Positions 10,522 through 19,715 of a stretch of DNA of 64,000 nucleotides are shown here, piece by piece (the stretch's first letter is position 1; every line of letters begins with the position of its first letter). Below the pieces are notes generated by a model. It was not told the origin of the DNA and searched no databases. It saw only the letters and a list, made by a program, of their open reading frames with translations. The position numbers and the translations under genes are program-made. The stretch is from the sequence record PV029745.1. One strand, given 5' to 3'.

Positions 10522-10538
10522 TATTAAGAATACCCTAT

Positions 10539-10553
10539 GTATACTAATATGTA
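10539..10553 (+). promoter_or_regulatory. Putative phage promoter (TATG-type) for tRNA-Ile2
   Basis: GTATACTAATATGTA, 13 nt before the tRNA; similar motifs precede other tRNAs. Confidence 0.45.
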
Positions 10554-10565
10554 GGTAATGAATTA

Positions 10566-10642
10566 GGGCCTATAGCTCAGTTGGTTAGAGCAGGCGACTC
10601 ATAATCGCTTGGTCGCAGGTTCAAGTCCTGCTGGGCCCACCA
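10566..10642 (+). tRNA. tRNA with CAT anticodon, most likely tRNA-Ile2 (lysidine type)
   Basis: GGGCCTA/TGGGCCC acceptor; AGAGCAGGCGACTCATAATCGCTTGGTCG body resembles enterobacterial ileX rather than tRNA-Met. Confidence 0.9.
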
Positions 10643-10725
10643 AATTAATAAAGCATAATGCCTCCCCTATTTAAGGGGAGGCATTATGCTGTCTACGATA
10701 ATAAAATAAATATCTGAACCGCAAA

Positions 10726-10740
10726 GGTTATCCTATGATC
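10726..10740 (+). promoter_or_regulatory. Putative late promoter of Kelch gene 1
   Basis: GGTTATCCTATGATC; near-copy GGTTATCTTATGAATC at 12785-12800 before Kelch gene 2. Confidence 0.5.
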
Positions 10741-10767
10741 TAAAATGGTTTACTTGAGAGCACACTC

Positions 10768-11775
10768 ATGTTTGAATTACTATTATCACCAGATATAGGC
10801 GAAGAGTTACCCTTGGTTGGATTTAATGAAATTATTAAATTAGGTGATCTACCTGTAGCGTTAGCTGGTACAATGTCATATGTGGATGGAAATACACTGT
10901 ATGTTGGATCTGGTCATCATACTGAAGGACAAACAGCTGCAACTGTGTTCAGACGTTTTACCATATCGCCATTTGCCGATATAGGTGCAACTGCTTCTGG
11001 AACATTCTTACCAGGGGTATCTTTAGGATTTGGGACATTACATAAGAATAACTTTATTGTTTATGGCGGTATTACTGGATGGAACTCGGCTGGTAATGGT
11101 GGTACGGGAACATCTAACTTTATACAACATTTTGATATAGCTACAGGCAATAGGGTTGAGCGATATAGTGGTCCCGTACCACTTTGGGGCACAGCCTCCG
11201 CATCAGATGGTAATGATCTTATTCTATGCGTTAACCCAATTGGCGTAAACGCAATGCGATTAAAACCATCAAGTAAGTCTTGGCTTAGCGGGCAAGACTA
11301 TTCAGGTGGTGCTCGTTCAGGTCAACAGTTATTCTTTTATAATGGTTACTTTTACCATTTTGGTGGTTGGGATAATACAAAGAACATACCTAATCTTGAA
11401 GTTTATCGATATAATGCAACTACCTTAATATGGGAGCAAACACCTTGGATGATTATACCTGCTGATAAAGGAACAATCTGGCAAGGTAATGGTTATGTAG
11501 ATGGGGACTATTTTAATTACCTTAACGCTGTTGATGTCGGCGGTGTAACTAAAATGTTTGCACAGCGTTTTAATATTAGGCGCCGGAAATGGGCTGAACC
11601 ATTTGAACTAGGTATTGGATTCCTTAATATTTCATCTATAGCCAAAGGTCCAGATAATAGCATGATCATTGCAGGTGGATCTAAAATGCCAGTTGGTGGT
11701 GGAGCATATATGTTAAAAAGCCAATTGTTATCGGGTATCTATCAGGTAAAACTAGCACCATTAGCCATTGATTAA
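10768..11775 (+). CDS. Kelch-like beta-propeller protein 1
   Basis: Repeated blades with GG dipeptide and downstream Y/W (LYVGSG, FIVYGG, FYHFGG, MIIAGG). Confidence 0.75.
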   Translation: MFELLLSPDIGEELPLVGFNEIIKLGDLPVALAGTMSYVDGNTLYVGSGHHTEGQTAATVFRRFTISPFADIGATASGTFLPGVSLGFGTLHKNNFIVYGGITGWNSAGNGGTGTSNFIQHFDIATGNRVERYSGPVPLWGTASASDGNDLILCVNPIGVNAMRLKPSSKSWLSGQDYSGGARSGQQLFFYNGYFYHFGGWDNTKNIPNLEVYRYNATTLIWEQTPWMIIPADKGTIWQGNGYVDGDYFNYLNAVDVGGVTKMFAQRFNIRRRKWAEPFELGIGFLNISSIAKGPDNSMIIAGGSKMPVGGGAYMLKSQLLSGIYQVKLAPLAID

Positions 11776-11849
11776 AATAATAATATTTATAATAAGGTTA
11801 ACTACACGTTATTTACATAATGTCATAAAAAATAAATAATACTCAGATT

Positions 11850-11862
11850 GTAATAATATGTA
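11850..11862 (+). promoter_or_regulatory. Putative phage promoter for the tRNA-Asn locus
   Basis: GTAATAATATGTA; matches GTAATGATATGTA (9203) and GTAATACTATGTA (14699). Confidence 0.55.
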
Positions 11863-11924
11863 GTGAAATACTGTAATTCAGTTACTTGTGATTTTTCTAC
11901 AAGAAAGAAGTTGTTAGTAATTCT

Positions 11925-11951
11925 TCCGCGATAGCTCAGTCGGTAGAGCAA
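11925..11951 (+). pseudogene. 5' half of a split tRNA-Asn gene
   Basis: TCCGCGA-TAGCTCAGTCGGTAGAGC-AA: acceptor 5' strand plus D arm, complementary to TCGCGGA at 12731-12737; no anticodon arm follows. Confidence 0.85.
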
Positions 11952-11969
11952 GCGATTGGATAGTTTTCT

Positions 11970-17591: not shown

Positions 17592-17648
17592 AAACAAATA
17601 CTGGCGTAGTGATTATATGTAAGGATTAGCGTTAAGCATATTCTACAT

Positions 17649-17734
17649 GGGAACATAGGCGAATTGGTATAGCCAGCTGGTTTAGGTCCAGCCGTCGTAA
17701 GACACTGTGGGTTCGAGTCCCTCTGTTCCTACCA
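17649..17734 (+). tRNA. tRNA-Leu (anticodon TAG)
   Basis: GGGAACA/TGTTCCT acceptor, GCTGG-TTTAGGT-CCAGC, long V arm, T loop, CCA. Confidence 0.92.
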
Positions 17735-17743
17735 TTTCAATAG

Positions 17744-17768
17744 AGCCTGCCGAAAGGCGGGCTTTATG
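17744..17768 (+). terminator. Intrinsic terminator
   Basis: AGCCTGCC-GAAA-GGCGGGCT-TTATG. Confidence 0.75.
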
Positions 17769-17899
17769 TTGCAAATTGTATGATTTAGTCTTTTGGTAAG
17801 TACCTTTAATGGGGGAGGCCTTAGACGGTAAGGGAGTAGGAACGTGAAGTTCTATACAGTCACCCCTCTGTAAACAGTCACTTTTCAATGGATAAAATT

Positions 17900-19468
17900 A
17901 TGTTTGAATCGTTGTTGTCAGTACTCATTAAGGTAACAGAAAATAAATTACCCGGTCCCTCTACCTTTGAATACGGTGATTCGACACTTGGTCTGTATGG
18001 TGAGTTAGCAAGTGATAAGTTTATAACTTACCCTCAGTTAAGAACACTTGTTGAACTCGATTCCATTGGTAGCATAAATACCGATGCCGGCTGGATTAAG
18101 GTATCTAGGAATAATGTTGTCATGTATTATTCAAAGACAGCTATTCTCCGATCCATTAGTCCAAACCAACTTGATACCGCTGGTTTAATAGATGGTAGTA
18201 AAGTTATTGTAATTGACGGAAATATGTTTAAAGTCCGTCTTATGAATGCAGGTGAAAATCCTTATTCTGATATTACTACCCAAGGTAATGAAGGTTCCGA
18301 GTTATGGGATATTTTTGGTAACGTTACAACCAAAGGAAGCTGGGCGAAATATACAGATTCTCAACTTATAGGTGCTGAAGGCGGTAGTTATAGCTGGGCG
18401 GCTAATAGAAATACAAATGGTAATTATCTACAGTTCTCGCCTTCGTCTACTCATCCCCAGGCAAAGAATGGAGTTTATGTTTACGACGGACACCCACCGA
18501 CGGAAGCTACTAATTATAGAGGATGGCGTCCAGTACTAGAATATATTCCACCTAAGGAACTTAAAGGTTTATCGTCTGTACTATCGACAGTAAATCCACC
18601 ACCACAACGTGGGATGCCAGTGCTTGCATATGACTCGGATAACAATGATATCTATATGGCTTGTGGATATACAACTGGACCAACTGCTTTCATGTCCGAC
18701 CTACATCGATTAGACATGGATACAAAAACATGGACTAAGTTACCATCGGTTGTGCCATTCCAAGGTGAAACCACTACCACGAATATGGTTTACAGTAACG
18801 GTAAATTAATTCTTCATGGTAACCCATTGTCAACTGGGCCAACTATTTATATTTACACCATAGCTACTGATACCTGGGAAACTAAAAAGCTCGCGGCTAT
18901 TCCAGGTTTGGTTGACGCTTACTACATCGAACGTACAGCCAGTATAGTTAAAGATGACATACTCTATATTGTCGGTGGTTTCTCTGGTCGAAACGATAAG
19001 ATCCATAAGAGTATTATAACGGTTGATCTAACCTCCTACTCAATCGATCTTATTGAAAATATTCTACCATTTGAGGCTTGGCATCACGATCTTGGATTTA
19101 ATGATAATAACGAATTAGTTATTGTTGCATCTCAAGGTAGATTATCTATTGGTGGAACAAATATCACACCAACGGACTATATAAAAATTAGTCCCGATTT
19201 TAGTGCCGCTGAGACCATCCCTTTAAATGCACCGGCTAATAAGTATTCGACGTATAGGTCTATTGTTTTCGGCAACAATATCTATATTACGAATAATACT
19301 ACAACACAGTTAGCATTGGTACAACTTAATAAAGAACCAGAGCTAATCGGAGATCCTTTCCCTACAATTAGGTCGTATGAAGAAATGGTGATTACATCAG
19401 CTGGTGTATATAGATTCAGCGGTGATGTTTCTAAAACAGCACCTGTAGTCGAATACGAAATTAAATAA
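17900..19468 (+). CDS. phiKZ gp131-like virion structural domain fused to a Kelch-like propeller
   Basis: Starts MFESLLS; PGP...GDSTLGLYGEL...GWIK...FKVRLM...GWRPVLE domain, then IYMACG / LYIVGG blades. Confidence 0.75.
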   Translation: MFESLLSVLIKVTENKLPGPSTFEYGDSTLGLYGELASDKFITYPQLRTLVELDSIGSINTDAGWIKVSRNNVVMYYSKTAILRSISPNQLDTAGLIDGSKVIVIDGNMFKVRLMNAGENPYSDITTQGNEGSELWDIFGNVTTKGSWAKYTDSQLIGAEGGSYSWAANRNTNGNYLQFSPSSTHPQAKNGVYVYDGHPPTEATNYRGWRPVLEYIPPKELKGLSSVLSTVNPPPQRGMPVLAYDSDNNDIYMACGYTTGPTAFMSDLHRLDMDTKTWTKLPSVVPFQGETTTTNMVYSNGKLILHGNPLSTGPTIYIYTIATDTWETKKLAAIPGLVDAYYIERTASIVKDDILYIVGGFSGRNDKIHKSIITVDLTSYSIDLIENILPFEAWHHDLGFNDNNELVIVASQGRLSIGGTNITPTDYIKISPDFSAAETIPLNAPANKYSTYRSIVFGNNIYITNNTTTQLALVQLNKEPELIGDPFPTIRSYEEMVITSAGVYRFSGDVSKTAPVVEYEIK

Positions 19469-19507
19469 TACTTCGTGTCTAATAGTATACGAGAGTATTC
19501 AATTTTC

Positions 19508-19585
19508 GCCGTTATAGCTCAGTCGGTAGAGCAACTGACTTGTAATCAGTAGGTCGATCGGGTTCGAATCCCTCTGACGGCACCA
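19508..19585 (+). tRNA. tRNA-Thr (anticodon TGT)
   Basis: GCCGTTA/TGACGGC acceptor, ACTGA-CTTGTAA-TCAGT, CCA; 78 nt with a 2-nt T-stem bulge. Confidence 0.9.
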
Positions 19586-19605
19586 GTTTAAGTAGTTTAA
19601 AATTA

Positions 19606-19682
19606 GGCTCCATAGTTCAGTTGGTTAGAATGCTTGCCTGTCACGCAAGAGGTCGCCGGTTCAAGTCCGGCTGGAGTCGCCA
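19606..19682 (+). tRNA. tRNA-Asp (anticodon GTC)
   Basis: GGCTCCA/TGGAGTC acceptor, CTTGC-CTGTCAC-GCAAG, G73+CCA. Confidence 0.96.
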
Positions 19683-19690
19683 AACATAAC

Positions 19691-19715
19691 AAGGAATCTT
19701 CGGATTCCTTTTATG
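19691..19715 (+). terminator. Intrinsic terminator with UUCG loop
   Basis: AAGGAATC-TTCG-GATTCCTT-TTATG. Confidence 0.8.

Follow-up and report, generated by a model that had tools for sequence, protein, structure and literature searches.

We analyzed a stretch of 64,000 nucleotides (the window) corresponding to bases 1 to 64000 of the 300.6-kb genome of Pseudomonas phage phiHQ (PV029745.1), a PA1C/PS119XW-like jumbo phage, and focused on a region in which transfer RNA (tRNA) genes alternate with four genes, K1 to K4, for Kelch beta-propeller paralogs. This alternating array, proposed in a preliminary description made from the sequence alone, proved to be real: ARAGORN, Rfam, Pfam, and the homology between K1 and K2 together identified eight tRNA genes with K1 to K4 between them. 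The 9.2 kb that hold the array are 100% identical to PV029745.1 at matching coordinates. The nearest relatives of phiHQ are PA1C, phiLBG22, BRkr, PS119XW, and HHBS36_1. HPP-Temi (genus Pawinskivirus) is more remote, and phiKZ and PhiPA3 are more distant relatives within the same family, Chimalliviridae. PV029745.1 is filed under Phikzvirus in GenBank, yet positions 14683 to 22215 are 98 to 100% identical to PS119XW, the type species of Pawinskivirus, and identity to phiKZ outside the K1 cassette is only 70 to 82%.

All four Kelch genes lie on the plus strand. The K1 cassette (positions 10725 to 11775) consists of a leader (10725 to 10767) and a gene of 335 amino acids (10768 to 11775). The K2 cassette (12751 to 14682) opens with a hairpin (12751 to 12769) and TTTTATG, followed by a K1-like leader and a gene of 618 amino acids (12826 to 14682), the allele of which we designate "a." The K3 cassette (16601 to 17591) starts with a hairpin (16601 to 16620) and ATATG and harbors a gene of 312 amino acids (16653 to 17591), and K4 (17900 to 19468) encodes 522 amino acids from the ATG at 17900. 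The longest open reading frame (ORF) at K4 opens at 17888; the conserved N-terminal tag described below opens at 17900, matching GenBank. K2 matched the Pfam Kelch model PF24681 with 175 bits (cut-off, 50), K3 gave a Kelch match of 156 bits, and K4 passed the cut-offs of four single-repeat Kelch models (Kelch_6, 38.9 versus 25.3 bits, plus three more). K1 stayed under every Pfam Kelch cut-off by sequence (20 to 22 bits), and against solved Kelch domains it reached only an E value of 2e-6, compared to 2e-29 for K3. K1 is, however, homologous to the N-terminal half of K2 (residues 1 to 324; E value, 2e-26), and residues 332 to 618 of K2 align with K3. By these alignments, K2 amounts to a K1-like propeller joined to a Kelch propeller of the K3 type. 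K3 is a single six-bladed Kelch propeller. The predicted structure of K2 (predicted local distance difference test [pLDDT], 78; predicted template modeling score [pTM], 0.77) was all-beta, with the first 12 residues disordered. Its best matches among solved structures were the six-bladed Kelch domains of LZTR1, ESP, NS1-BP, and Keap1 (target TM, 0.8 to 0.88), and its best viral matches were PhiPA3 gp360, the PS119XW allele, K3, and the K1 ortholog of phage PA7 (TM, 0.77). In K4, the Kelch repeats follow a different N-terminal domain of about 215 amino acids, which also occurs in phiKZ gp83 and in virion proteins of several other phages (201phi2-1, Psa21, Noxifer, and others).

Kelch proteins are common in bacteria, which contradicts the earlier statement that Kelch repeats are mostly eukaryotic. 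Their rarity in phages was borne out, with 21 of 50,697 phage records matching K3. Very few members of the K1 family are present in public data (7 matches in 1.8 billion representatives in a full HMMER search), and word-based protein searches with K2 and K4 returned nearly only relatives from phiHQ-like phages and generic Kelch proteins.

Among the long ORFs of the window, only K1 to K4 open with M-F-E-x-L-L (MFELLLS in K1, MFEVLLG in K3, and MFESLLS in K4). The same opening was found in phiKZ gp83, PhiPA3 gp360, the Kelch protein of phage D6, and a metagenomic relative of K4, and degenerate versions occur in Noxifer. The codons used for the tag differ between the paralogs, indicating that the constraint acts on the peptide, and we infer that M-F-E-x-L-L-S/G could represent a shared docking tag. 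Two further phiHQ proteins carry the tag and lack Kelch repeats; they are encoded at positions 233963 to 235231 of the genome (minus strand; MFESLLA) and 299842 to 300492 (MIEILLS). The former consists of two copies, and the latter of one copy, of the K4 N-terminal domain. The tag, together with the codon-use pattern described below, is a feature newly found here.

K1 is 98% identical at the amino acid level to phiKZ gp298, with the same leader and the same place behind a tRNA and its terminator. According to a 2025 preprint, transposon mutants of phiKZ orf298 grow on and adsorb to PAO1 and show neither plaques nor adsorption on a clinical and a soil isolate; gp298 was described as a Kelch/NanM-like, low-abundance virion protein, and a tail location was inferred for it (10.1101/2025.11.23.690004). 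Relatives of K1, K3, and K4, as well as PhiPA3 gp360, are likewise annotated as virion structural proteins in their records and in PHROGs. The phenotype and the 98% identity thus establish an adsorption role for the K1 ortholog only, and K2 to K4 may share this role by virtue of their paralogy with K1. The ligand- or receptor-binding function proposed in the preliminary description is therefore supported for K1 through the gp298 adsorption mutant and may extend to K2 to K4 by homology.

One could argue that the Kelch proteins are no receptor binders at all and are instead sugar enzymes (NanM-like mutarotases or galactose-oxidase-like proteins) or capsid decoration or internal proteins, the gp298 defect then being indirect. 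The Pfam model NANM (cut-off, 45) indeed matched K3 with 69 bits and K2 with 49.8 bits, both over short stretches only (K1, 21.8 bits), metagenome relatives are named N-acetylneuraminic acid mutarotase, and gp83 is annotated as a structural head protein, with the PHROG category "head and packaging." We nevertheless consider this quite improbable, given that the gp298 mutant fails at adsorption itself and on some strains only (10.1101/2025.11.23.690004), that the general Kelch models far outscore NANM, and that the best fold matches are protein-binding Kelch domains. Moreover, alleles only 22 to 30% identical at a single slot, as found for K2 (see below), suit surface recognition better than a housekeeping enzyme.

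All eight tRNA genes of the window lie on the plus strand, and ARAGORN and Rfam agreed on each of them (46 to 73 bits in Rfam). They form six transcription units that begin with a promoter-like motif and close with a terminator of the phiKZ type. The first contains tRNA-Leu(taa) (9430 to 9515) and tRNA-Pro(tgg) (9522 to 9597), with a looser promoter-like motif just upstream and a terminator hairpin at 9609 to 9627. The second (10529 to 10690) comprises the motif (10529 to 10553), a tRNA with the anticodon CAT (10566 to 10642), and a 17-bp terminator hairpin (10652 to 10690). This tRNA was called tRNA-Met by ARAGORN; its counterpart is labeled Ile in the records of two relatives, and tRNA-Ile2, the earlier designation, is a plausible assignment for it. 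The third motif (11838 to 11862) precedes a disrupted tRNA-Asn and a second, long-arm tRNA-Asn. In the tRNA-Tyr unit (14687 to 14849), the motif (14687 to 14711) begins 5 nucleotides (nt) past the K2 stop codon and is followed by the tRNA (14729 to 14817) and the terminator (14830 to 14849). The tRNA-Leu(tag) unit (17597 to 17763) consists of the motif (17597 to 17621), the tRNA (17649 to 17734), and a hairpin (17744 to 17763) followed by TTATG. Finally, in the tRNA-Thr/tRNA-Asp unit (19467 to 19710), the motif (19467 to 19491) overlaps the K4 stop codon and precedes tRNA-Thr (19508 to 19585) and tRNA-Asp (19606 to 19682), with a terminator hairpin (19691 to 19710) and TTATG at the end.

Terminator-like sites, defined as a hairpin plus a T stretch, were enriched about threefold over shuffled sequences (21 versus 6.8 ± 2.9), and one of them closes every tRNA unit, as had been noted before. 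A scan for sigma-70-like promoters gave 36 sites versus 34.9, i.e., no enrichment, so that the promoter-like motif reported earlier at most tRNA loci is not of the host type. The motif itself was confirmed as a phage-specific element, AATAC-N8-TRNTNNTATRYR, in which AATAC is followed by eight bases and a T/A-rich stretch ending in TATG. It lies upstream of five tRNA units and occurs six times in the 64 kb, compared to 0.01 expected. Since the pattern was built from those five sites, its independent evidence lies only in its rarity elsewhere. Without the leading A, it has one extra copy in the other 236 kb of phiHQ, giving just seven in total in the 300-kb genome. The motif positions are conserved across all relatives, and the motif also precedes tRNAs in the distant phage D6. 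A phiKZ copy directly behind gp298 stops 1 nt short of the 5' end mapped for an abundant small RNA.

These elements fit what is known of phiKZ transcription, namely, terminators made of a C-rich/G-rich hairpin followed by TTAT (PMC10914365), an A-rich, middle-type promoter element carrying TAC(T) some 22 nt upstream (PMC8244752), and the start-site motif T-A-T-G of the non-virion RNA polymerase (PMC7598289). The predicted features of phiKZ-type transcription units (TATG, A-rich/TAC about 22 nt upstream, hairpin plus TTAT) are present at every unit. In addition, every K gene has a terminator hairpin and TATG ahead of it, and the preliminary view that the Kelch genes are insulated between the tRNA units is thus right in sequence terms. 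Window positions 23415 to 23597 (minus strand) hold the sixth copy of the tRNA-type motif, followed by about 155 nt of G+C-rich noncoding sequence ending in a hairpin. This sequence folds more stably than shuffled sequences (z = -3.0; 0 of 200 shuffles as stable) and had no Rfam family match. It may encode a small RNA similar to the abundant one mapped after phiKZ gp298.

To see how the Kelch genes vary, we compared eight genomes. Between the CAT tRNA (tRNA-Met) and tRNA-Tyr, phiHQ and phiLBG22 carry K1, an insertion with an HNH endonuclease gene (see below), and the K2 allele K2a. PA1C has the same content plus a 218-amino-acid gene; BRkr carries K1, the HNH insertion, a 218-amino-acid gene of another type, and K2b; PS119XW and HHBS36_1 carry K2c alone and K2b alone, respectively. 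HPP-Temi has an intact tRNA-Asn, a 218-amino-acid gene, and K2b and lacks K1, K3, and K4, and the only Kelch gene in the tRNA region of phiKZ is K1 (gp298). Whether K1, K3, and K4 are present thus depends on the lineage, whereas the tRNAs are retained. The Kelch genes were proposed to be exchangeable, and indeed they do not form an invariant, syntenic set in the relatives, with three alleles of K2 and gain or loss of K1, K3, and K4. The 218-amino-acid gene belongs to no known family and lies just upstream of K2 (PA1C, L002 5004-5660; BRkr, L003 4736-5392; HPP-Temi, L006 4318-4974). It has no copy in phiHQ and exists as two types that are 47 to 49% identical, the BRkr/HPP-Temi type accompanying K2b.

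The three alleles of the slot before tRNA-Tyr, all two-propeller proteins, are 22 to 30% identical, while the phages that host them are 93 to 99% identical around the slot; PS119XW and HHBS36_1, for example, are 99% identical downstream of it and carry different alleles. Conversely, K2b is 99.5% identical in BRkr, HHBS36_1, and HPP-Temi. HPP-Temi and BRkr share a block of 95 to 100% identity whose limits are the terminator following tRNA-Asn and the 3' terminus of tRNA-Tyr, in flanks of 60 to 80% identity, and the gene neighboring K2b is 75% identical between the two. Similarly, K1 of phiHQ is 97% identical at the DNA level to that of phiKZ, in flanks of 82%, and about 80 to 87% identical to K1 of the other PA1C-like phages. 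Overall, phiHQ is a mosaic of BRkr-like, phiKZ-like, phiLBG22-like, and PS119XW-like blocks, and the synonymous divergence (dS) between phiHQ and PA1C ranges from 0.03 to 0.9 from gene to gene. The ratio of nonsynonymous to synonymous divergence (dN/dS) was 0.02 to 0.10 within the K allele classes, i.e., they are under strong purifying selection, indicating that the diversity arises from replacement rather than rapid point change.

Differential loss from an ancestral K2a-K2b-K2c tandem is a less likely origin of the alleles, since no genome was found with two of them or with remnants; it is also disfavored by the identical junctions of the alleles and by near-identical K2b on diverged backbones. 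Programmed diversification by a retroelement or an invertible segment was considered as well, and a repeat scan of the region gave no sign of such a system, the only similarities being those among Kelch repeats and between tRNAs. Scans with the leader pattern detected one IMG/VR contig (PA7-like) and no metagenome contig, and no further alleles were found in these data. A K gene within a tRNA cluster was found in Phikzvirus, Miltoncavirus (gp360 between tRNA pairs), Pawinskivirus, and D6.

The points at which the alleles join the common sequence were then located. On the left, the K1 and K2 alleles share a leader of about 40 to 60 nt and the first 21 coding bases (seven codons), which are common to all alleles and to phiKZ gp298. 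On the right, the boundary of the K2 alleles lies 1 to 4 nt past the stop codon, where the promoter motif of tRNA-Tyr begins. Accordingly, homology between phiHQ and PS119XW ends 21 nt into the ORF and returns 1 to 4 nt after the stop codon. The K3 and K4 indels of HPP-Temi are bounded by tRNA-Leu(tag), an island of 98% identity in DNA that is about 80% identical or cannot be aligned. Several boundaries therefore coincide with tRNA promoters, tRNA ends, or terminators, which bears out one part of the earlier idea that tRNA/terminator units act as recombination anchors. Support for this idea is only partial, however: the left anchor of K1 and K2 is the leader plus 21 coding bases, further breakpoints lie inside genes, and tRNAs are shuffled between genera. 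Taken together, the tRNA units appear to be frequent exchange boundaries, and others exist too.

Within the array, HNH endonuclease genes are found at tRNA genes, a feature overlooked in the preliminary description. The canonical tRNA-Asn of phiHQ (plus strand; first to last base, 11925 to 12745) is broken once by a single insertion of about 0.75 kb. The insertion contains a tRNA of 87 nt with the anticodon GTT (Asn) and a long variable arm (plus strand, 11970 to 12056), followed by a hairpin, and a gene for an HNH endonuclease of 185 amino acids (plus strand, 12138 to 12695). The latter is the ortholog of phiKZ gp296 and matched Pfam HNH_3 with 41 bits (cut-off, 24.8). What had been described as a tRNA-Asn locus thus does contain a tRNA-Asn, but also an HNH gene and a disrupted second tRNA-Asn. 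The long-arm tRNA-Asn has a class-II-like shape and the discriminator base G. Twelve bases upstream of K4 (17793 to 17804) equal its first 12 and may be a tRNA remnant, although the match was not significant by BLAST.

The same disrupted tRNA-Asn is found in phiKZ (L005 8261-9111), along with an intact copy at a second site, and an intact canonical tRNA-Asn is present in HPP-Temi and PhiPA3 as well. In phiHQ, the disrupted gene has lost further bases, and its remains do not sum to a full tRNA. A group I intron was considered, and Rfam detected no intron family at an E value of 1 or below in the region. Because of the lost bases and the lack of a group I intron match, the insertion looks like an endonuclease cassette rather than a spliceable intron, and it looks as if the cassette replaces the tRNA that it destroys. 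PS119XW, HHBS36_1, and HPP-Temi lack the cassette. In HPP-Temi (L006 9459-10063), the canonical tRNA-Thr is broken once by another HNH gene, behind which lies a long-arm tRNA of 84 to 87 nt with a Thr anticodon (Rfam, 58 bits). Next comes another unusual long tRNA (Rfam, 40 bits). In BRkr and phiLBG22, a third HNH paralog occupies the position that tRNA-Asp has in phiHQ. There are hence three different HNH insertions at tRNA genes among the eight genomes, and in the Pseudomonas syringae phage D6, a tagged Kelch gene sits between a tRNA and an HNH gene within a tRNA cluster. By their domain, their presence/absence polymorphism, and their position at the target gene, the predicted cassettes have the traits of free-standing homing endonucleases, and the HNH genes at tRNAs would be the likeliest drivers of exchange.

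The Kelch genes also stand out by their codon use. K1 to K4 have the lowest third-position G+C of the window (0.24 to 0.33). Furthermore, the tagged family ranks 1, 4, 8, 12, and 25 of 207 ORFs genome-wide in the combined use of ATA, CTA, ACA, TTA, and CCA (Mann-Whitney p = 3e-6), the codons read by the neighboring tRNAs with the anticodons CAT, TAG, TGT, TAA, and TGG. The two tagged genes without Kelch repeats rank 12th (233963 to 235231) and 3rd (299842 to 300492) of the 207 ORFs in their use of codons read by phage tRNAs. This bias may reflect foreign origin, low expression, or a real dependence on the phage tRNAs.

Based on these data, we propose that the region serves a phiKZ-family jumbo phage as an accessory locus for host range, which lies within the tRNA cluster and whose cassettes are swapped by recombination, a reading to which we assign a probability of roughly 60%. 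The genome comparison and, for K1, published genetics support its core, namely, that the adsorption proteins form an exchangeable set. Each tRNA or tRNA pair would form a short unit of its own, with a promoter for the phage RNA polymerase (A-rich/TAC ... TATG) and a hairpin-TTAT terminator, and each Kelch gene behind a tRNA terminator would be a separate unit starting at a TATG late-type promoter; such separate units would account for the alternating, insulated look of the array. K1 to K4 would be low-copy virion proteins docked to a common site on the particle by the N-terminal tag, and their one or two Kelch beta-propellers would bind strain-specific surface structures of Pseudomonas aeruginosa. 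Each extra paralog or allele would then add or change strains that can be adsorbed, as demonstrated for gp298 only. Diversity would arise by replacement of cassettes, and not by point mutation, through homologous recombination between co-infecting relatives, using short conserved flanks: on the left, the leader together with the codons of the tag, and on the right, a tRNA, its promoter, or a terminator. The HNH homing-type endonucleases in or beside tRNA genes would probably supply the initiating breaks. If the Kelch-family genes are those most dependent on the phage tRNAs, this would provide a second reason for the linkage of both gene classes. The idea of tRNA anchors was thus partly right, and the leader/tag sequences and the HNH genes need to be added to it.

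Several observations weigh against this proposal. Block boundaries are also found within genes, namely, in K1 (close to the 3' end) and in the small genes, and tRNAs change place between genera: after the gp299 homolog, phiHQ has tRNA-Met, and phiKZ has tRNA-Asp and tRNA-Asn. Given such breakpoints and relocated tRNAs, the tRNA units are not privileged anchors in any demonstrated sense, and their high conservation would be expected from function alone. The role of the HNH proteins as cleaving enzymes is predicted from their genes, the codon bias could merely mark recent foreign origin or low expression, and the K4 model, built from only seven sequences, is unusable (pLDDT, 50). The functional data come from the K1 ortholog only, in one preprint and obtained in phiKZ; the head protein name given to gp83 in older annotation and the PHROG category of the family point away from the tail; and the comparative sample amounts to eight genomes.

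Along the same lines, the alternation could be a by-product of a hyperplastic accessory region that tolerates insertions, shaped by ordinary mosaic recombination in which neither tRNA units nor HNH genes are special. Besides the breakpoints inside K1 and the small genes, this would be in agreement with the different set and order of tRNAs in phiKZ, PhiPA3, HPP-Temi, and phiHQ, with the clustering of orf298 with other nonessential genes in the transposon study (10.1101/2025.11.23.690004), and with the gp83-type members of the family, which are encoded close to the DNA polymerase gene in a neighborhood devoid of tRNAs. It would not, however, readily account for allele junctions that are identical in all lineages (leader plus 21 nt; promoter motif after the stop codon), for the HPP-Temi/BRkr block of high identity ending exactly at a tRNA end and a terminator, for Kelch genes in the tRNA clusters of four lineages including D6, or for the Kelch family being the top users of phage-tRNA codons. 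We therefore regard it as possible but rather doubtful and retain the host-range locus with swapped cassettes as the preferred reading.

A stronger version of the latter would be a coadapted module, in which HNH cassettes home into tRNA genes and bring along sequence-divergent long-arm tRNAs of the same anticodon as replacements, the resulting breaks drive gene conversion that moves the Kelch cassettes between co-infecting jumbo phages, and the tag-docked Kelch family is kept beside the tRNAs by its translational dependence. Although attractive, this joint reading is speculative, and we judge it unlikely as a whole. If true, HNH homing, Kelch exchange, and tRNA dependence would be one linked system, an endonuclease-driven module for host-range diversification.

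In T-even and other phages, receptor-binding tail-fiber modules are exchanged mosaically between relatives by homologous recombination. The Kelch cassettes resemble these in that the flanks and the N-terminal or attachment part are conserved, the putative receptor-binding part is highly divergent and swapped, and each allele class is under purifying selection. They differ in that the predicted binding part is a Kelch beta-propeller and not a fiber or spike, in that the conserved protein part comprises only about seven residues, and in that the K genes are remote from the tail genes, with tRNA units insulating each of them.

The endonuclease genes have a close parallel in T4 SegB, a free-standing homing endonuclease encoded within a phage tRNA cluster that causes preferential inheritance, gene conversion, and rearrangement in mixed infections (PMC2330249; PMC13096335). 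However, SegB is a GIY-YIG enzyme, while those of the phiHQ group are HNH enzymes predicted from genes alone; moreover, two of the HNH insertions disrupt a tRNA beside a long-arm tRNA of the same anticodon, and the variable cargo here consists of virion adsorption genes. Another giant phage, vB_PcaM_CBB, encodes the Kelch-like structural protein CBB_552, detected in virions by mass spectrometry, with several paralogs in a small accessory cluster (PMC5259590). Like the phiHQ proteins, these are Kelch propellers of giant-phage virions, and they match the fold of the K2 model; unlike them, they belong to an unrelated phage group, with no tRNA interleaving reported (PMC5259590). Within its own family, phiKZ has one Kelch gene in the tRNA region, while phiHQ and the PA1C-like phages have four paralogs, one of them a two-propeller protein with three alleles.

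Between the tRNA-Tyr unit and K3 lies a block of small genes (plus strand, 14853 to 16592) that comprises a gene of 187 amino acids (phrog_26055) and four or five short ORFs. The 187-amino-acid gene could start at 14853, the ATG of the terminator TTTATG, as in the PA1C annotation, or at 14880, the start given in the phiHQ record.

PhiKZ-family jumbo phages are therapeutic candidates against P. aeruginosa. The determinants of their strain range are poorly known, and a link to adsorption was made only recently for one Kelch protein, gp298. Our data place gp298 in a tagged family of virion proteins whose members are insulated cassettes in a tRNA cluster; the array, the alleles, the N-terminal tag, and the tRNA link are described here and are not part of the gp298 preprint (10.1101/2025.11.23.690004). 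Natural relatives differ mainly in the cassettes and alleles they carry, so that this genotype can be read when the host ranges of isolates are compared. Overall, phage tRNA clusters, homing endonucleases, and host-range genes, which are usually handled apart, are linked at this locus.

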